DNA of 54,075 nucleotides, filler included, from Sluysia triapertura (taxonomy: Eukaryota), in assembly GCA_046118255.1 (NCBI GenBank). It is 4 parts of 4 records of this genome, joined end to end, with 100 filler letters (N's around TTAATTAATTAA, not from the genome) between each part and the next. Parts side by side here need not be neighbours in the genome. Positions count along the whole stretch, not along the records: positions 1 to 12,867 come from JBJNIA010076606.1; 3 more parts are not named here. The stretch is one strand, 5' to 3'. The translations under genes were made by a program, and so were the position numbers. The notes beneath the pieces were generated by a model. The model was not told where the DNA came from, ran no database searches, and saw only the letters and a program-made list of their open reading frames with translations. Each line of letters begins with the position of its first letter. Positions within the stretch are counted from its first letter, which is position 1. Of this stretch, positions 1 through 12,867 are shown piece after piece.

Positions 1-1453
1 TTTATTACTGAAGATTATAAATTCTGACTTTTCTTCATTGATTTTCAAGTATTTATTTCCAAACCATTTTATCAATTGGTAGTAAATTTCAGTCAATTAT
101 ATAAGTTTAGCTTAGATATAGTAATAGGAACTTCATCTTTACAACATAAGACGTTTACTGTAACCGTCCCCTGTTCAATTTATATTTTGTTGTAAGCTAA
201 GTGTTAAGAAAAAATCACATGTATGTTGGCATAATGTACAAAGTTTGATAGATATATCCAGCTCATCAAATAATTTCAAATGTAAAGCTCAAATTCATCA
301 TTATAGGTCTAATGAATTTTTAACAAACATTACATCCAAATATATGACAACAAATGAAAAAATCCACATATTACAAAGTTTTTAAAGCTTGCATTCTTAT
401 TTTTAGGACTAAAGTTTTTTATTTTTATTGAAATTTTTTAGTATGAATTTCTTGGTCAATAAATGCTTTTTACATTTTTTCTCTTTTGATTTAGTAACCA
501 AAAATTTGTGAACTATCGAGCTTCGGTCGACCTAAATTGTTCTTTTTAAAGGCTTTAAGTGCTATCATAATTTGAATTTCTATATTAATAAGAATACGTA
601 TTTCTTAAATTTTCTAATTAAATTATTACGTTACTGTTAATCTTGTGTTTTAAGCGTCTAAGTTCCATCACGATTCTTTAATCATTAAATGCAATTCTAA
701 ACTTAATTATCATACATTAAAATTAAACATGCGCAATAATTAAGTCGAATTTCCATCATCTAAATACTATTTTATCCCATAGCACATAAATCAATGAAAT
801 AGTTTAACATTATCTTCTGCTTTAGGAAAGTTGATTCAATAAACTCGTGGCAAACACTGAATCTTACATTTGCTTAGTAATGACTAAAATTTATATAATT
901 TAATTGAGTTATAATTGATTGCTATAATGGATGAATTTATATTGAATTATAATTATGTACTTTCTGATAAAGTTTATAATATATTGAGATTCAACTCATT
1001 TATAACTGTACTTCTTCCGAATGCCTATTGGCTTATTAAAATTTAATTTTTTGAAAATGACATTACCCAATGAAACATAAGAATGATAATATTGATAATT
1101 AAAATTACAATAATAATAATAATAAAAGAAATAAGAAATGAGAATCTCAGTATAATATAAAATATAAATAATTCTGCGACTTGACGTCATTTATTGTCGA
1201 TTTGTAAAATAAAAAATTAATCAATCTAATAATTTCGATTAAGAAGAACTCTGGAAATAATTTACAATTTCGAACTACACATTGTTACTGTATTTTAATG
1301 AAAATATAAGCGTGTCTCTATAATGGAATATGTAATGGAATAATAACCATCTATCGTACTAGCCCTCTACACTACAATTTATTATTAAAAATGACGTATT
1401 AATTAATGAATCATAAGGGTAACGTTAAAATTTAGATTAAGAATGTTGTGTAA

Positions 1454-1987
1454 CCCATTCGCTGCCAACCTCGAATATACACGTGACACTTTCAATATAC
1501 AACTTGTGGAGATCTTGCAAACCTTTTATGGCCACAAACATAAATACATACAAGTTTAAAAACTTGAAAAAAAGCTATAAATTGTTTTGACAAAAATTCT
1601 ACTTTATTAGTTTGTTATTTCCCAACTAATAATTTATTGATATGCACTACTTCTAACCCTACAAAACTACACTGCTTACTCATGAGAAATGTTAGAGTCA
1701 AATTGTTCAATATTACATGATCCGGTTATCTCCGAGACGTTTTTTAAGTATTTTTATACTTTCATCTATTTGTGTGATTTACGATTTGTTTTTTATGCTT
1801 AAACGTGTGCAAATAAGAAAAAGGATACCGAATTCTGTTGCATTCCCATTGCCAACCGCACGAGTATACTCGTGTTTAATTTTTATACATGTAAATGATT
1901 ATTATTTATGACAAAATATGTGCATTATTTATCTTGAAATAATAAAACTTAGATAAACGAACAACTTCATACAATTCAGCGAATGGG
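1454..1987. mobile_element. piggyBac-type MITE (about 534 bp)
   Basis: Perfect 11-bp TIR CCCATTCGCTG (1454-1464) / CAGCGAATGGG (1977-1987). Flanks are GTAA (left, one mismatch) and TTAA (right). The subterminal motif GCCAACC..CGA(A/G)TATAC(A/T)CGTG recurs at about 1464-1485 and 1851-1874, including the palindrome CACGAGTATACTCGTG. No ORF. Confidence 0.8.
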
Positions 1988-2830
1988 TTAATGTAATTGC
2001 ATATCTTTCATTCATTCTTTAATAACGTTTTTTATATAAAAATCATGATTTTTATAAAAAATCAACCAATGACAATTTTAATAATAATAAACCTATAAAA
2101 AGTACAAATTATGACTTAATGTTTATAGCAGTATTTCCAAAATAGAACAGTATGAAATATTAATAATCACCAAAAAACGAATGATTATATATATTTTGTG
2201 ATGGCAGGAATAGAACCGAATGTTTTGAAACTATTACAGATAATCATTATGTATAATTTGAGAAAAATGTGCAAATCGTTAAGCAAAAAAAGACTTCTGG
2301 ATCCATATTGAAAAAAGTGATAAGAATTGTTAAATTAAGTGTCATTAAGTAATGACGTTATCAAAGAGGTTCGTTTCATTTAATAAAAGAATAGTTTCGA
2401 AGAAAATCGTAGAAATAATCATTATCCAGTTAACGTCTTAGAAATATTCCTTCACTTAGCACATTCTATGCGATTTTGGGACACTTGTGCAAGAAATAAA
2501 TTTTTCAGTTGTTTACCTTATGATAATTTATTTATTATAATTTCTAACGGTTGCCACAATCACCACTAATTCGTAAAATCCGAGTTTTTTCGACTTCGCA
2601 GACTAGCGATACTATGTCCAGAATGTTCTTCCTTCTGTTGATACAATTTAATAAGCATTATAAAGATACGATATAAACTTCTATTTCATGCTCGCTATGG
2701 AATATTTCATTTGCCCATATAAAAGATTGTAAATATAAAAGATCACAAAAAAATTGTTTATCGTAAATAAACAAAGAATATAAAATATTATATAAATATT
2801 AATACTAATACAACCAGGGCCATTATTATA

Positions 2831-3308
2831 TATTGGTGGCCAAATTATTAGACTAAGACCATTTTTGTGATAAAATTCAACTATTAATCAAAAGTGTATA
2901 AAAACATTGTCAATGTAAAATGTTGAAAAATAACTATTTTCTCCAAAAAAATTCTGATGAAAGTAAAATAATAGATAAAAATACTGAGATCCAAAACATA
3001 CAGAACTTTTATTCATGTAAAATGTGATAACACAATTTACTACAAATCAAATATGTACAAACTTTTGTTGTATCAGTACTTTGTTTGCCCTCCTTTGTTA
3101 TCCAATAATTTCCTGATCATTAAAGGCACATGCCACGGATGAGCTTGGATCACAAGTTTTTAATCATGGTTTCAATAAGTCGACAATCTCTCACAGATTT
3201 TCTATGGGATTCGTGTCTGAAGAGTTTCGACGCCAGGGGAGCAAATATTAAGAAAACTAAAGAAAAACAAATTTTTCCTATTTTAGTCTAATAATTTGGC
3301 AACCACTG
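2831..3308. mobile_element. Tc1/mariner-type MITE, copy 1
   Basis: About 26-bp TIR (consensus CAGTGGTGGCCAAATTATTAGACTAA) at both ends with TA flanks (2829-2830, 3309-3310). The interior aligns in reverse orientation with 34599-35045. Confidence 0.85.
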
Positions 3309-4321
3309 TATGATAAAATACTATCTTTCTCTCTGATCGTTTCAGTGTTTTCTAAATTTTAGTTTTATATTCGAAATACGTCACAAATAAACAAATTAAT
3401 AGGTAACAAACCATCTGTTGTCGCATTGTAAATACTCAACTGATTCATTCTAGTTCTAGTTCTCATTTCCATTCCGTCGGCGTTTAAATTAAAATTAATT
3501 AATTAATTTGCAAATTTCTACTTCCCTGCGTAACCATAGAAACACGTCTTAACAAATCGAGTAACTCTTTGGCACCTGTCGTATCCAACCGACCATGCTA
3601 AATCACTAATATAAAGTAATAAGAAGTAATATGGAAATAGGAAACGGGAAACGGATAGTTATTTGTAGAATCTAAAAGAACGTCAAAATTATAAAACGTC
3701 ACATCAAATTCTATGATAAACATGTGCTCTTTTGGCCACAACAAATCTACAAATGTGTCTATGAAAATGAAAAAATAATAATGATTTGGATAGGCTAAAC
3801 AATACATGCTAAGATTATCGAATGAAGATTCACTGAAAGACAATTCTTTTTAATATAATAGTAATGTTGGCAATCAACGAAATAAAGCTACTACTAATAA
3901 AAGTAGTAGTACAATAAGATCAAGATAATGACGATGCCTTTTAACAGGAAATTACTTTCTCAGTTTAACCAATTTTCTCAATTCATATTTTGACTTTTCG
4001 TATAATAATAATTGTTAAATTTATCCAGCTCATCCTAGATCTAAATGTGCACAGCTGATACACAAAATGGTGATAGAAAGTGTTATCAAAACCTTGTAAA
4101 TATCAATAGAAAAGAACATTAAATATAAGAAAATGTTTGTACATGTTTTATTGGATTTTTTCATATATCATTTCTTTTTTGAAGTAATACTTTCTGTATT
4201 ATTGATTTCGGACACGATTGACATATTAATACAAATGATATTGATAAGGGTGAACGTGTATCCCATATATTGATTTACCGAATTATTATTATCATTATTG
4301 TTTTTAAATGAATTTATATCA

Positions 4322-5723
4322 TTAATTTTTTCGATCATTATTATTTTTAATTTTATTATTTTTAGTATTACTTTTACTACTTTTAATTTTATTATTGTTA
4401 CTATTTTTACCATCCAATAACAATTCCGCTTCATCATTATCCTCCAATGAACTATTACAACTGTCTTCAACATGCACATAAATTTGTTTATCAACCGCCT
4501 CCAATTCGCGATGATAAAAGTAATTGAAATTCGATACTATAACTGGGACTGGTAATGCAATCGTTAGCACTCCGGCAATGGCGCACAAACTACCGACTAA
4601 TTTGCCCCACATAGTAACAGGACGCATATCACCATAGCCAACCGTAGTCATTGTAACTAAGGCCCACCAGAATCCATCGGGAATACTGCGGAAATATGTC
4701 GTTTCTACGTCAGCTTCAACGAAATAAACAGCACTTGAAAACAAAATCACACAAATCAATAAGAAAAACACCAACATTGTCAACTCTTCGATACTGGCTC
4801 TTAATGTTTGACCTAAAATTTGTAGCCCTTTGGAATGACGGGATAATTTGAATATTCGAAAGACACGAACTAATCGAATTATTCTCAAGATGGCCAATGA
4901 AGTGGTTTGGTTTTGTGAATCGGGATTATCTAGTATAACTCGTGTCAGTGTAATAAAATAAGGCAAAATCGATACAAAGTCAATTAAATTCATCATATTT
5001 TTCATGAACACTAACTTCTGTGGCGATGACACAAATCGAATGAACAGTTCCCATGAAAACCAAATTATACAAAACGTCTCAATGAAAAAAAACGGTTCAC
5101 TGAACGATGGAATATCATTATCTTTAATTATTATATCGGTGTGGTTAGTAATATTGTCATAGTCGTAAGTTACTTGATACTGCTGAAATGCAGGCAAAGT
5201 TTCGACACAGAAAATTATTATTGATACAATAATTATTGATACTGAAAACACAGCCATTAAGCGAGCGCAGAGTGAACTTTCGGGATATTCAAGAAGTAAC
5301 CAAATGCGTTTTTGAAGTGCATTTACCGGCAACACTTTCACTTGTTCTTTAACATAACCCTCGTCCATTCTATAACGATCAATAGCATCTTCACCTAATT
5401 CGTAGAAATTAATTTCCTCCAAAAACGTCTCCATGGTAACATTAGATGGTCGTCTTAAATTACCACCGCTTTGATAAAAATATAAAATGCCATCAAAACT
5501 GAGTCTATTTCGGTCGAAAAAGTATTCATTTCTGATTGGATCATAATATTGATTACGTTTTTTCGGATTACCTAATAATGTGTGTGGGAATTTGTCTAAT
5601 GTTAGCAAGCGAGTTTCGAATCGCATACCGCTAACATTAATTACAACGCGTTCTGAACTACGGAAATGATTAACTGTAGTACAATCACCGTCTTGAATGG
5701 TTTTGATTCCGAATTCATTTTTT
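4322..5723 (-). CDS. KCNA: Voltage-gated K+ channel, Shaker/Kv1 subfamily (large coding exon; 5' exon not identified)
   Basis: T1 domain ([38 protein letters not shown]), S1-S6, S4 [25 protein letters not shown], filter TMTTVGYGD and S6 [17 protein letters not shown]. The frame stays open upstream of the ORF-track ATG (5626) to a TTTTCAG acceptor just above 5723. Confidence 0.96.
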
Positions 5724-6742
5724 CTGAAAATAATTTATCTAAATTTTATTTATTGACAATAGTAAGTAGATAATTTATTTAAAATATACATTGTCAAATT
5801 TTATTAATCATCATAATTTATACATTGCTAGAAACACTACTTTTATTAGTGCTGTGGTTTTTCTAACACGTAACCCGCGGCAAAATATTTTTAGCAGGTC
5901 CGATCACAGTGAACGTATAGTGAACTTAATCAAAAAATCTGCTAATCTATTTAATGCTTATTAAATACCCAAAACGTCTTTTTACACAATTTTTATAAAC
6001 AATACTTATCATAATATAATTAACAATGAAATAAAACCACAAATCCAAAACTTTATTATTTACATATTCACTGGTTTACAAAAATTGTGCAATTTTAAAA
6101 TAAGAATGAAGGAAAGGATATTATAGTCTTTACTCCTCAGTATATCTGGAAAACTTAACTTTTTCTTTTAAAAATTAAATTTACTTGTATTTTAAGATAT
6201 CAATTTTCTTAATCAAAATTAGTATCACTTTACAAAAAAGAACTTAGGTAACATGGAATTGGTTGATGAAAATTTTATCTAAATCGATCGCTAAAATCCT
6301 TGAAAATCCAATTGAACCAATATTTTCAAAATGGCGATTCTCATTAAACCGTTGCTAGTTTAAATATACTAGTCATCAGCCAATGAGAATCGATGGAATA
6401 TTCTATAACATTCTAGAAGCTTCTGTTCTATTTCAGAAAAATAATTTCTTTTTTGGAATGTAATTATTTTGTGATTTTATATGATTTTAGATGGTTGTGA
6501 TGACAATCTAACATTAATAAATATTGTTTTCCTGCCTCGCAACTTTGAATTTATCATTGACTAATGGAAAGGTATTTAAAAACAAAAATATAGTTTTTTA
6601 AAAGCAGCAAGTTCATTTTCTTCCAATGAATTACAATATTTTCTGAACGTTACAAAGAGAGATCTTGTCAATTGTTGGGGTAAAAGGCCTAAAAAGTGCC
6701 AAGTAGTATAATTTAATATATTGAAAATGAAATTGTTAGACG

Positions 6743-6814
6743 GGGCTGATAGCTCAGTGGTAGAGCATTCGCACTGAGCATCGAAGGTCCCGGGTTCGAT
6801 CCCCGGTTAGTCCA
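6743..6814 (+). tRNA. tRNA-Ala-derived gene with non-canonical anticodon arm
   Basis: Acceptor GGGCTGA/TTAGTCC with G3:U70 and A73; D arm GCTC-AGTGGTA-GAGC (A box); T arm CCGGG-TTCGATC-CCCGG (B box); TTTT at 6815-6818. The anticodon arm TTCGCACTGAGCATCGAA does not fold as a 5-bp stem with a 7-nt loop around AGC. Confidence 0.85.
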
Positions 6815-7279
6815 TTTTACGAAGTCTAACAATATTAATTAATAAATTAATATTTATAAATCGTTCATCGAGTTCCTAACTTAGACAAAAACTTAAAATT
6901 AGATTGAATCATTTTAATCATAATTAATAGATTGATTATACTTTCAACCCATAACTTAAAATTAAAGACTTTAACTAATCTATTTGCAATTAAAGTTAAC
7001 GTCTACTAAAAACGTTAATTAACGTAATATCGAGGTTGATTTTACGACATATTATTATATACATTTGTTTTTTATCTAAAATATATTGACTACATTATTA
7101 TTATTCATTTTTTTTCTGTACAACTGTTCTATTTCTAATTGATATAATCGTCTTTGTTTTATACAATTGTGTTAATTTAGTATTTAGTTATTTATTAATA
7201 AATAGTTTTAGTGTATCTTTTCTTTAATTTTAAGTAAGTAATTACACTACGTTACTTGTCCGGAAAGTTAAGGTAATAG

Positions 7280-7695
7280 CTATAATTAGTAAAGCGACAG
7301 AATTAGAAATAGCATAAAAAACCTCCAAATTATTGTTTTTCTTTGAAGCTGCAAAATCTGGGTGCTGGTCTTTCAGTGAGTGGGTCCAGTATCGCAGAGA
7401 ACTCACGTTTAGAATAAGTCTTAATTTAATTTAATTACTTTCATAACCAAAATTTCTACATATTGTAAAACGATTTTACGAACAATTCAAAACAAATGTC
7501 GAAGTGCAATTTGAAATGTTCGAAGATCATCAATGATGACTTCGGTGTTTATTGTATTCTTGAACAGTTTCCATAACTAAAAAATCTGTGAAGAAATTGG
7601 TTTATTTGGACAAGGAAAACGAAGCTTCGTATGAAAGACATAATTTTACTTAGTCATAATATAATTATCCAAGGGTTTCTCGAAGGGCCATGTTT
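7280..7695 (-). pseudogene. Degenerate hAT (Buster/GTF2IRD2-like) transposase C-terminal relic
   Basis: Frameshifted fragments NMALR, SKIMSFIR(K)LRF and LRYWTHSLKDQHPDFA...FGGFLC resemble the hAT LQG/KI..F..KL and FW...YP.L...FGSTYLCE dimerisation motifs; many stops. Confidence 0.45.
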
Positions 7696-10295
7696 CTATC
7701 AATTCAAAAATTTAGGTCTGCTTTTTAAAATACCATTTGATGGTAGTTTTGTTTTTTGTGTTTAAAAATTTGTTACGTTATTCTCCTTAATAAAGTTTTG
7801 ATGACATATTACAAGAAAAATTTAATTTATTTTTACAAAAACACTATAATACAATTTTGTAATGAAATTTCAATAAAGTACTGTCGCTTAAAAGATACTT
7901 TTGTTGCAACTTTAAGGACCTTATGTCCATTTAAAATTTTAATACTATTTTGAATTTTTAATGAAAGTAAAACCACACCGACCAATTTATATAACATGTA
8001 ATAGTAATTCCTGCAACAATGTATTTTATTTTAGTAGTTGTCATATTAATATGCCAAGATTACTACCTATTATTAACGAAAAGTGAAAATGAGTAAGAGA
8101 AAGAGTTATAAAAGAAAGTTAGTGAAATTGAGGTGTTTAATGGAAACTTTCATTTAGTTTTATTTTTTGGATTATAAAATGTTAATTTAGTAAATTTTGA
8201 TATGAGTGATCCATATGTTCTTTAGCTGTCAAGATTGGCGTGTTGTGGAGTGTTAAAATTTTGCGTAACGGTGCTGATCACCACATATTGGATTGGAGGT
8301 AAACTCCCTAACATTTTAACCTGTTGAATTTATGATCGTATGTTATTTAATGAATCCACATGAATAAAAAAATTTAGAAGGTTTGCATTTATAGTTGAAT
8401 ATAAATTCAATAATGATTAAATCAAATTAACAATGAATGACTGATCAAATGATAAAACTAAGAGCACAACCAGAATTTAGAATTAAAGGTTTCTAATACT
8501 TTAATTTTATAATTGATGAATTTTAACAAGGATTGTAGCCCTTATTAAATCAGGCGAAATAAAATTACAAAGGATATTTGAATAGTATATATAGTATATA
8601 AACAAATAAAACAGGATGGCGTCGAATTACTTAGATCTGCTAAAATTAATATTACAAAATCTGAATTTAAATAATGAAACTAATTTAATTGCGAGCATAA
8701 TTGAAACTGTCATTTGTTTATATACCAGTTTTTATCCAATCACGTTTTATTACGTTAAAATAAAATTATTTTTATCTTTAATACTTACTTTTGTAAGTAA
8801 TGATTCGAAAACATTAATTTTATTATATTTTAATATATATTAATTACTCATTATTATTTTCTTGCTTTAGTAAGTAGTTAATATTTTTAATTTTTTGATT
8901 ATAATTTATTATTATTGCGTATAGTATTATTATTTTGAGAGAATTTTATGGTAGGTTCACAGGTCAATTGAGAATCACAATGAAAATATCTAAGCTGGAA
9001 TAAAAAGAGGACGCAAATAATATAATAACGATCAATAAGATATTTTATCAGTTCGGTGTAATATTTATAAAATTCTAAGTAGAATAATAAAAATTTGAGA
9101 GTGCATGTCAATAAATTTAATTTATAAAAAATAATTTTAGTTTTAATTTCGAAATACACAACATTGTACCGGTTTATTTATTGCTTTTTAAAAAATCAAA
9201 TACGAATAAATTGACAAAATATTTCTAGTATTTAATATAAATTAATTTTTTATTTTAAATATTTTTATTACTTAACATTACTAATATTATTAGTATTTAA
9301 TAATGGTAAAATAAAGCATCGAAATGTTATATGATTAATATGTTTTAAACAAAGCGTAGAATTTAATTGGTTGTTTTCCTCATCTCACATTGTTTACCAC
9401 ATATTTGTTACTCTTATTCAAAAAACACAAAAATATAAAGCATGTGTGTAGTCAAAATGTAAATAAACATCAAAAACATTTTAAATGATTAATATTTGAT
9501 AATGGTTTGATAAATCATATTGTTATAATTGACGTTTTTTAAGTTTTATATAATATATAAAATAAAGAAATAAAAACAAATTTGTAAAAATTAAATATAT
9601 TTAATTATGCATATATGATACGTTGAAAGGGTTTAATATTTTATTATTAGAAGAAATTATTACAATCATCAATAACTATAATTCATACTAGTAATGTTAA
9701 TACATTACTGGTAATTTTTTAAATTATTTCTTGAGTTATTTATGCATGTTCAAATATTATCTTGGTACAATACCATCATCATCACGACTCTTGATTTTGG
9801 GAAATTCATGATCCTCAATTATTATTAAAAATTCTCTCTGTTTCTATATTAATCTTTCATTCTGAAACTTTACTGTCGAAGTGTGAGCTCATACTACAAA
9901 TATTTTTATTTTGCGCTGGAATATTGTACCATTACTCTCTTAACAACATTAAAAAATTCGTTACCTATCTCATCATAAACTACTTGTCAATTTTTAGTTA
10001 TACCAAAATGGCTGAACTTTTTATATTTAGACAAAATATGAATGTGTCATTCCTCTAATAATAAATATAGTAATAATGATAATAATTTAATAATAATAAT
10101 AATAATATAACATAATATTTACTTATTCTTTAAATTTCTTAAATTTTCTTCAGTTTTTTAAATCTACTTTAATTTTTAAATCTCAAATTTATTTAATTTA
10201 GATTTCGTAAGATTTCAGTACTAATAAACATAATAACCATGTAACTGTTATCATTATTATTATTTCTTTTATTCTTTTTTATACGAACACACTCA

Positions 10296-10850
10296 ATGAA
10301 ATTAAAACGAATAGCAACAAAAATTCCATTAGTCGACAAGCAAAAGAAAGCAGCTGCTTTAATTTCTCAATACTCGCCTGGTTGTAGTATTGATTTCTAT
10401 GTTGATAATAATATTTATCTTGTTGGTGTTGAAGATGGAACAATTCATAGATGCTCATGCCCATATAATGAACAATATCTAGATAATTATTTCGGACAAT
10501 CAACTCCAGTTTATTGCATCAAGTGGTCTCCATTTTTATCAGATGTCTTTTTAAGTTGTTCAGCTGATTGGACAATTAAATTATGGCAAACAGAGAGAAA
10601 TAGGTCAGTTCTGAATATACAAACAAAAGGAAAAGCCGTGAATTCACTTGCGTGGTCTCCAACTAGTTCAATCTTGTTCGCATGTGTTTATGAGTTATAT
10701 AGTGAAGTATGGAATATTGCGATATCAACTTTGGATCCAATTGTCACTGCGGAATTGTGTCCAATATCAGTTACTTTAACCACAGTAACATTTTCTGATT
10801 TCGGTCAATGCTTATTAGTTGGAAATAATGAAGCTAATGCTGATGAATAA
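10296..10850 (+). pseudogene. DNAI4: WDR78/DNAI4 (axonemal dynein intermediate chain) C-terminal WD40 fragment, truncated
   Basis: MKLKR...ALISQYSPG..IYLVGVEDGTIHRCSCPYNEQYLDNY.G..PVY.IKWSPF.SDVFLSCSADW...ISTLDP...CLLVGNNE matches the WDR78 C-terminus. Homology ends at about 10831. The upstream pyrimidine tract ends in AT rather than AG, and no upstream exons were found. Confidence 0.8.
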
Positions 10851-11561
10851 TGAAAAGCTGCCGCCTAGTTTACCTATGTCAGAAGCTGTTTTGTGGAGAA
10901 ACTATGGTCTTACCAATGTTATTCCTATCATTTCTTTGGGACTTACTTTACAAACTCAAGTATTTACTGCGTCAAATTCAATTTGAAATGGAAACAGCAA
11001 ATATATGACTATAGTCATTCGAATTTCAACCTCTATTTTTTGTTTGTGTTATTGTTTAGTAGGTATATTTGGATATTTAAAGTTCTCAAATTTTAAACCA
11101 AAAATAAGTGCCGATTTGTTATCAATGTATCCCGAATCATTTAGTTCTTTTTTCATGAAGGTGGGATTCTTAGTGTCTGTCGCTATATCATATCCTTTCA
11201 CTGTGTTTCTAGTTAGAACTAGCCTTTATAGTCTTTTATTTATTAAGTCAACTCAAATTGATTTACCTAATCCAGAATCTTGTGTTGTGTTATATCCGAT
11301 AAATCATTTTTTTGAATTACTTTAGGAATTATATTTTCTTCTTTATTCATTGGTTTTATTGTTAATACTATTGAAGTTGTTCTAAGTTTAACTGGATCAT
11401 TGAGTGGTTCCATAGTTTTATTTATTTTACCGTCTTTAATTTATATAAAAAGTAAACCATTATCAGAATATAGAATTATTGGAAATTTCATATTCTTGTT
11501 TGGTGTTGCAGTTCTAGCTTTGTCCTTTACAAATTCATTTGGTTTTCAAATTGTAAAATAA
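10828..11561 (+). pseudogene. SLC38A10: SLC38A10-like amino-acid transporter, 3' half, with an in-frame TGA and a frameshift
   Basis: LWRNYGLTNVIPIISLGLTLQTQVF..SI*NG..M...VGIFGYLKF...GFLVSVAISYPF..F.VRTSLYSLLF, then a 1-nt frameshift near 11313 into ITLGIIFSSLFIGFIVNTIEVVLSLTGSLSGSIVLFILPSLIY. TGA at 10984-10986; terminal TAA at 11559-11561. Confidence 0.78.
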
Positions 11562-11837
11562 AAAAATGAATTCTAGTTCAAACTTGTTGCAAAAATTAAA
11601 ATGCAATTTCCAATATATTATATTGGGTACAATGAACAATATGCTTTATTTTTATTTATATTACATTTTCTTTTCGTTTTTGGAATTATCAAGATCAATT
11701 TGTTTATATCTTATTTTTATGTTAAATTTTTATAGTACAAATTACACATAAATATTAATGCATTTTTTAAAAAGTAATATTTAAAAAAAATCAATATTTT
11801 CATGGCAATATATAGCCAATTTTGCTGTCGGATACTA

Positions 11838-12383
11838 TTATATACTATTGGAAATTTTTGGTGGTTGATTAAAATTACTTTTATGTGGGATAGTATATCG
11901 ATCATCATTGTCGTTATTTGGAGGTAGGCACGAATATCTGCATTTGTTTGACAAAAACATAATAATTACTAATATAACTATTGATAATGTCGCCGCCAAT
12001 ATTAATATTAATAGAGCAGGATCACTTTTTAACATTTCCGATAGTGATAAGTATTTCCGTGTTCCCCTTGGTGCAAAATGTAATTGTTCTAATTTTGACG
12101 GTGCTACATATATTCTAGTTATAATATGTCGTTAATCATTGTGTAAGAAACCCGAAAATCTAGCTATAGGATTTACTAGGTTTTTAATGTAATATTCTTG
12201 CACGTTCCATGAGCTAAAATTATGTCGTGACGGTTTAAGGCACATAAACCTTACATGAATATCGTTTTGCAATACCTTGACTCTAATTTCGATGTCATAA
12301 TTACGAAATTCAAGATATTCAGTTTTATAAATTTGTACATCATATATATTGCATTGTACCGTGATAATCATTATAGTTAACAT
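11838..12383 (-). pseudogene. Orphan single-pass (type I) membrane protein ORF interrupted by one TAA
   Basis: ORFs 12132-12383 and 11838-12035 are in the same frame, separated only by TAA at 12134-12132 (linker RHIITRIYVAPSKLEQLHFAPRGTRKYLSLSE). Hydrophobic N-terminus (MLTIMIITVQC) and a TM segment ALLILILAATLSIVILVIIMFL. Confidence 0.5.
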
Positions 12384-12867
12384 TAAAGTTATTAAATTTT
12401 TATTTGTTATATGTATGCGTAATTTTCTACTAAAGTCAACTACATGTAGTATAATCCATAATACGTGTACTACTATAAGAATTACGGAAATAAAAAAATA
12501 GCTTATACGTTAAGGTAATTATATTATGAAATGTGTCGCTTGACGAAATAACATCATCTTTGAATTCGGAAATACAATTGTTCATTGATTTATTGCTGTT
12601 ACATTTTGTACAAAATTTCTTAGTATTGAATTTCTTTGATAATATTGTAGTGGTAAACCTCATAAGTTAAGATTAAAACAAACCTTCTTAAAACAACAAT
12701 ACTCACTACAACATCTTTCAAACATAAACATCCAACAATAAATTAATCCATATCTTAACATTCCCAACTCAATAAACTCTTACATTCATGTCAACAACTC
12801 AAAACACTCACTCATTAAATACCTTATCAAACAATTCACAACATCCATTCATCAAACACTTCATCAA

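Follow-up and report, generated by a model that had tools for sequence, protein, structure and literature searches.

A tRNA-like gene with an enlarged anticodon arm as a probable young copy of a very abundant tRNA-derived repeat in Sluysia triapertura

The tRNA-derived SINEs of flatworms and other animals carry a tRNA-like head with internal Pol III A and B boxes, reach very high copy numbers and are organised as a head, a body and a tail that derive from the Pol III transcript. The Sm-alpha SINE of Schistosoma stems from tRNA-Gln-TTG, and thousands of its copies have been called tRNAs or tRNA pseudogenes by tRNAscan-SE (PMC2770079). A different arrangement is seen in Helenus (TRIMp3), a group of miniature, non-autonomous LTR retrotransposons in which each LTR contains a tRNA-like sequence, and which has been described from Mollusca, Brachiopoda, Nemertea, Arthropoda, Chordata and Ctenophora; both solo LTRs and tandem arrays are known, and the largest reported family comprises 5,575 LTRs (Kojima 2024, PMC10886601). 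Alanine tRNAs and their natural and engineered anticodon variants offer another comparison. Their recognition by AlaRS depends on the G3:U70 pair and the A73 discriminator whilst the anticodon is not read, and alanine tRNAs that bear foreign anticodons mistranslate (PMC9976931, PMC10543346, PMC12084884). The 5′ half of human tRNA-Cys-GCA has been printed (PMC8413832) and is compared below.

The locus described here lies at 6743–6814 of the window, by which is meant the whole stretch of Sluysia triapertura DNA that was analysed (assembly GCA_046118255.1; 54,075 nucleotides including filler, with positions 1–12,867 taken from JBJNIA010076606.1). We consider it likely, at roughly 80%, that a very abundant tRNA-derived repeat of an AT-rich animal genome is represented at this locus by a young copy with only slight mutations. 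With the tRNA-derived SINEs it shares a tRNA-like sequence, A and B boxes, a very high copy number and the tendency of tRNA finders to report an odd or undetermined tRNA type; with Helenus it shares conserved A and B boxes in a tRNA-like sequence, a short unit with non-tRNA sequence on both sides, and a disagreement between isotype and anticodon; and with alanine tRNAs it shares G3:U70 and A73. The features of the locus, all on the plus strand, are as follows.

6673–6742 (+): AT-rich 5′ part of the repeat unit, common to the family, with GGTAAAA and TATAAT motifs (from depth; start approximate)
6732–6741 (+): left arm of a perfect 10-bp inverted repeat that brackets the gene, ATTGTTAGAC (inverted-repeat search)
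6743–6814 (+): tRNA-like gene, 72 nt, with an 18-nt anticodon arm (Rfam RF00005, 51.1 bits; ARAGORN tRNA-???)
6750–6760 (+): Pol III A box, TAGCTCAGTGG (read directly; the 17-mer 6750–6766 is unique in the window)
6768–6785 (+): non-canonical anticodon arm, 18 nt, with a TTCG/CGAA 4-bp stem around 10 nt or a mismatched fifth pair
6772–6779 (+): loop segment CACTGAGC, exact reverse complement of D-arm positions 6752–6759 (inverted-repeat search; used in the minimum free energy, or MFE, fold)
6793–6803 (+): Pol III B box, GGTTCGATCCC (read directly; a 14-mer unique in the window)
6815–6818 (+): TTTT Pol III terminator, adjoining the discriminator (read directly)
6819–6833 (+): 3′ trailer of the unit (depth falls away past ~6833; joints at 6831/6832)
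6824–6833 (+): right arm of the inverted repeat, GTCTAACAAT, with CA at 6830–6831 (inverted-repeat search)

Outside the anticodon arm, the gene has the anatomy of a tRNA. The RF00005 tRNA model matches 6743–6814 (+) from end to end (model positions 1–71) with 51.1 bits against a gathering threshold of 29 and an E-value of 1e-8. Read directly, the acceptor stem comprises seven pairs between 6743–6749 and 6807–6813 (G1-C72, G2-C71, G3.U70, C4-G69, U5-A68, G6.U67 and A7-U66), the D arm occupies 6752–6766 (GCTC-AGTGGTA-GAGC), the T arm 6790–6806 (CCGGG-TTCGATC-CCCGG), and the variable region is 4 nt long. The A and B boxes are perfect, and neither the 17-mer of the former nor the 14-mer of the latter recurs elsewhere in the window, where chance would give 0.01 and 0.07 occurrences, and the tRNA part is 58% GC, as against ~25% in its surroundings and ~26% in the window as a whole. 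The initial annotation had proposed that the acceptor, D and T arms, the A and B boxes and the TTTT were intact, that G3:U70 and A73 were present, and that the anticodon arm had been rebuilt, and these observations are borne out: the first by direct reading and the Rfam score, the second by the G at 6745, the T at 6811 and the A at 6814, and the third by an arm that consists of TTCG, CACTGAGCAT and CGAA, giving 18 nt instead of the usual 17, with 10 nt in the region of the anticodon loop where the Rfam model has 9. The same arm can be folded with a five-'bp' stem that includes a C.U mismatch and closes an 8-nt loop, ACUGAGCA. ARAGORN finds the gene but a 7-nt loop does not fit, so that it is named 'tRNA-???' with a two-letter anticodon, and in the drawing a 6-nt loop is closed only with the help of two non-pairs. 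In this arm, where a C sits 3′ of GAG, no 5-bp stem was found that closes a loop of 7 nt containing U33 and a purine at position 37; nor does such a loop present any of the alanine anticodons AGC, UGC and CGC, this copy having GAG and the family majority GCG in an 8-nt loop.

The abundance of the unit emerged from run X1 (contigs, 736 Mb), the sole public run that holds 5650–7850 and one that may be the assembly's own sample. Contigs of this run were aligned to 5650–7850 at a likeness of at least 90%, and their summed k-mer depth was used as a rough measure of copies. In all 11,352 contigs aligned, 1,560 at 99% likeness or above and 3,942 at 95–99%. The unique flanks are covered by perfect long pieces at a contig depth of ~16–26 (~20x), and the organism is therefore present in run X1. 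Against this baseline of ~20, summed depth reaches 2.0 million over 6686–6759 and 1.25 million over 6760–6833, with 0.14 million in the preceding bin (6612–6685) and 7.4 thousand in the following one (6834–6907); it stands at 1.5–1.9 million at 6714–6734 and steps near 6680. Depths of more than a million mean that the gene, together with ~60 nt upstream and 19 nt downstream, is a very high-copy repeat unit. Within the X1 contigs, the joint that runs back into the unit lands at 6673 and joints leave it at 6831/6832. The unit is thus about 155–160 bp, extending roughly from 6673/6680 to 6833, and is made up of a ~60-nt AT-rich leader, the 72-nt gene, TTTT and a trailer of ~15 nt. Taken at face value from the summed depth of this one contig run, its copies number roughly 10^4–10^5 equivalents. 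There are hundreds of distinct loose ends and all the joints shown are at single-copy depth, which suggests that most copies are dispersed or lie in irregular clusters and do not form a regular satellite. Exact-string and repeat searches of 12.9 kb of the window found no further copy, and a frequency of one per 12.9 kb is compatible with ~10^5 copies if the genome measures several hundred Mb (X1 itself comprising 736 Mb of contigs).

Searches of sequence collections returned no further copy of the unit. Neither the odd arm nor, as a separate pattern, the acceptor/D...T/acceptor frame gave an exact-pattern match in metagenome or genome contig collections, and a 27-nt pattern that runs from the 5′ acceptor strand through the D arm into the anticodon stem gave none in viral contigs. 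When the antisense ORF at 6716–6832 was used as a protein query, a word-index search yielded no candidates and an exhaustive search gave only generic antisense-tRNA ORFs. The best match in that search is an observation in its own right: on the 14.77-Mb chromosome CP149427.1 of an unrelated eukaryote (GCA_041937105.1), canonical tRNA-Thr(CGT) genes recur at least 50 times in a perfectly regular tandem array with a period of 204 bp, tRNA-Met genes come next, and the array has been annotated as a spurious antisense ORF of 1,893 aa.

The letters of the X1 family separate what is common to the unit from what is particular to this copy. No variant amounting to at least 10% of family depth was listed at 6735–6771 or 6786–6891, so that members of the family have in common the acceptor stem (with G3, U70 and A73), both the D and the T arm, the terminator and the trailer; at the same 10% level the rest of the unit in the window matches the family majority. 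The variants cluster in the anticodon arm, at 6772 (C/A, ~54/46 of family depth), 6777, 6781 (T/G, ~52/48) and 6785 (A/T, ~50/50). At 6777 the window has A where C accounts for 518,800 of a depth of 523,400 (99%), the window's A being kept in ~4,600, and at 6714 it has T where nearly 100% of the depth has G. The family majority reads ACUGCGCA, keeping the 8-nt loop with the anticodon GCG in place of GAG. The enlarged arm, G3:U70 and A73 are thus traits of the whole family, whilst 'GAG' and the unpaired 31:39 are confined to this copy or a minor subfamily, to which the depth that keeps A at 6777 indicates that the window copy may belong. Both of its private changes, at 6714 and 6777, are from G:C to T:A, which fits the AT-biased decay of a young copy; the GC-rich, intact look of the gene is likewise explained by the youth of the copy and does not require selection. 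The near-equal C..G and A..T forms at 31:39 (~50/50) were considered as evidence of compensatory covariation and rejected, because the variants at 6772 and 6781 are unphased and the consensus of the loose ends reveals one abundant subfamily with an unpaired stem, in which A stands with G.

Folding of the bare, unmodified RNA distinguishes this copy from its family. The loop segment and the D arm form an 8-bp helix that the initial annotation had missed, and because 6772–6779 complements 6752–6759, the computed MFE structure of 6743–6814 is a D/anticodon hairpin at -28.6 kcal/mol, compared with -21.0 for the cloverleaf. Substitution of the majority letters into the 6743–6814 copy, which permits a comparison of structures and is not a full-length consensus of the element, gives cloverleaves as the MFE folds, in which a 5-bp stem closes an 8-nt loop (-26.4 kcal/mol for the C..G form and -24.2 for A..T). 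It is the window's own combination of C..T with A at 6777 that flips the preference to a hairpin that is not a tRNA. On these models the copy is predicted not to be a working decoder, since it would misfold, the D-arm strand pairing with the anticodon loop. A template-switch origin of this complementarity was considered and is unneeded: in the family the D arm and the loop already match in 7 of 8 letters where 6772 is C (6 of 8 where it is A), and a single substitution completes the helix.

The arm bears a closer resemblance to Cys-GCA than to Ala-AGC, either of which may be related to the ancestor. A run of 21 consecutive letters, ATAGCTCAGTGGTAGAGCATT, is identical to the 5′ half of human tRNA-Cys-GCA (as printed in PMC8413832). 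By contrast, the acceptor stem is unrelated to that of tRNA-Cys-GCA, the discriminator here is A where that of Cys is U, and the anticodon is not GCA. One variant of the family arm (TTCGA, A, CTGCGCA, TCGAA) can be aligned with a Cys arm of the form TTTGA, CTGCAGA, TCAAG if a single additional nucleotide and several substitutions are allowed for, and the A..T form of the family arm fits such a Cys-GCA arm better than it fits Ala(AGC). Unlike alanine tRNAs, the locus has an 18-nt arm with an 8- or 10-nt loop, lacks an alanine anticodon both in this copy and in the family majority, and exists at the copy number of a repeat. Its fourth acceptor pair is C4-G69, where animal tRNA-Ala usually has G4-C69, and its T arm equals a T arm typical of animal Ala-CGC/UGC, a possible lead as to descent.

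The surroundings hold several other features. An intronless Shaker/Kv1 ORF of 434 aa lies at 4322–5626 (-), ~1.1 kb from the tRNA-like gene, with BTB_2 and Ion_trans domains and an N/K-rich tail; it starts at T1 profile position 9, so its true start may be upstream, and within it, at 4529–4642 (-), there is a full-length match (90.2 bits) to the Rfam potassium-channel RNA editing hairpin. Its best named relatives, at 63–70% identity, are from trematode, monogenean and macrostomid flatworms and from molluscs, which places the AT-rich genome among the spiralians and probably close to the flatworms. No identical protein was found in the protein collections searched, where the nearest (75% identity) comes from a 1.7-kb contig without flanks. 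A second and unrelated high-copy repeat, which may be a MITE, occupies 6316–6470 (summed depth 6e4–1.2e5 compared with ~20); it contains an inverted repeat (6331–6346 / 6382–6396), and at 6386 and 6400 the window departs from the majority letters of this second family. The segment 5798–5945 is also repeated (summed depth ~1.1e4), and between the two high-copy repeats, at 6538–6611, the contig depth in run X1 is ~6 against a single-copy value of ~20. Exon-like ORFs for fragments of a WD40 beta-propeller (10296–10850, +) and an Aa_trans transporter (11005–11325, +) are probably parts of intron-containing genes.

As to what kind of repeat this is, the locus resembles SINEs in that its tRNA-related head contains the two Pol III boxes and, in the one contig run, its copies are numerous and dispersed. 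The proposal in the initial annotation that it might be a young SINE head therefore came closest: a young copy of a high-copy tRNA-derived repeat is what it appears to be, but the layout is not that of a classical tRNA-SINE, which is contradicted by the TTTT immediately after the head, by the lack of any body or tail downstream and by the ~60-nt 5′ extension that belongs to the unit. One possible identity of the unit is a solo LTR left by a miniature, tRNA-bearing LTR element of the Helenus type. A candidate unit running from TGTTGG at 6673 to CTAACA at 6831 has TG/CA ends and five of six terminal letters inverted, its boundaries being taken from depth bins and one joint, and in a single X1 contig 6831 is linked to 6673 by 34 nt that have a TGG-like start and a purine-rich end, as a PBS plus a PPT would. 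That joint is present at single-copy depth only and no high-copy internal region is evident; moreover there is no 4-bp target duplication (CAAT at 6669–6672 against ATAT at 6832–6835), the window holds one unit and not the two-LTR structure, and the copy number is one to two orders of magnitude above that of the largest reported Helenus family. A MITE-like DNA element may also be considered. The gene is bracketed by a perfect 10-bp inverted repeat, one of at least 9 bp being expected in only 3–6% of comparable flank pairs, and two contigs show a second unit that starts from 6733/6734 at a distance of 1–10 nt past 6831/6832. Here the difficulty is that the conserved 5′ part falls outside the inverted repeat and that no clear target duplication was found; ATTGTTGG at 6671–6678 is similar to the left arm, with 7 of 10 letters matching at 6671–6680. 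Lastly, the gene may have spread with its flanks at the DNA level, or the copies may be clustered gene copies.

The functional readings of the locus fare less well. The initial annotation derived the arm from Ala(AGC) and proposed, amongst other roles, an Ala-charged Leu(CUY) mistranslator, a GAGC quadruplet +1 suppressor or a non-ribosomal alanyl donor. Both 'AGC' and 'GAG', however, stem from the single copy-specific C-to-A change at 6777, so the derivation fails, and it is extremely improbable that the single locus is a selected mistranslator or quadruplet frameshift suppressor. The CU-GAG-CA and GAGC letters are there, as are G3:U70 and A73, but GAG is one change from, and like GAGC is absent from, 99% of family depth; near-identical copies are very numerous; the copy has a mismatch at 31:39 and a pyrimidine 3′ of the anticodon; a non-tRNA fold is favoured by about 7 kcal/mol; and ARAGORN assigns no anticodon. 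A locus that is one of very many near-identical copies does not look like a dedicated alanyl donor either. Two more ordinary explanations had been named as well. That the locus is a single unconserved pseudogene does not agree with its very high copy number, and an assembly error that hides a canonical arm does not apply, given that the enlarged arm is found family-wide in the X1 contigs. A weaker form of the latter, in which the odd arm at this locus is a mosaic of collapsed repeat copies, draws on its position within a repeat of more than 10^4 copies and on the fact that, among the X1 contigs listed, no unique one bridges 6247–6835; it is nonetheless very unlikely, as the A at 6777 is kept in ~4,600 of 523,400 depth and so exists in reads, and as the enlarged arm of the family is not an error.

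A role for the family as a whole is harder to dismiss. Apart from the extra loop nucleotide the family cloverleaf is complete, and with a terminator of its own the unit is more gene-like than most SINE heads, a layout that may leave room for a family-wide RNA function. Thousands of copies might then be transcribed by Pol III as functional tRNA-like small RNAs, charged by AlaRS through G3:U70 and either non-decoding or weak quadruplet/+1 readers, with the window copy possibly impaired. It agrees with such a role that G3:U70 and A73 show no variation at the 10% level, and neither do the helices (loop size excepted), the two Pol III boxes or the terminator, that the majority-letter versions fold as cloverleaves, and that AlaRS needs only an acceptor helix with G3:U70, alanine tRNAs with foreign anticodons being able to mistranslate. 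The uniformity is equally expected from a very recent amplification, though, and no functional tRNA gene family comes near 10^4–10^5 copies; within the unit, variation is greatest in the anticodon arm; and the loose-end consensus reveals an abundant subfamily whose stem is unpaired. We therefore regard functional small RNAs as an unlikely explanation of the family. The broader proposition, that the family is either a Helenus-type tRNA-bearing LTR element that occurs in a new lineage and at a record copy number, or the source of an abundant, expressed and alanylated tRNA-like RNA that is non-decoding or quadruplet-reading, in an AT-rich spiralian genome, we would call rather unlikely.

If the favoured reading of a young repeat copy is correct, a unit with leader, tRNA-like gene, terminator and trailer would have been multiplied, and the enlarged arm, G3:U70 and A73 would have been inherited by all copies; this copy, or a minor subfamily, would then have gained the C-to-A change at 6777 and the unpaired 31:39. 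Judging from the promoter and terminator, each copy could be transcribed by Pol III into a tRNA-sized RNA of ~72–76 nt. Alanylation of the transcripts is conceivable because AlaRS reads only the acceptor helix, and the 8-nt loop would be expected to decode poorly or not at all.

It is the family, rather than the single copy, that is the object of interest: it is of a known kind, a tRNA-derived repeat, with an unusual, gene-like layout of the unit. In this genome tRNA finders will report tens of thousands of 'undetermined' tRNAs, or of 'Leu/Arg-like' tRNAs 'with Ala identity', and such calls represent a repeat family to be masked and not oddities of the genetic code. The family could also throw light on the spread of tRNA-like Pol III units that lack a SINE body.
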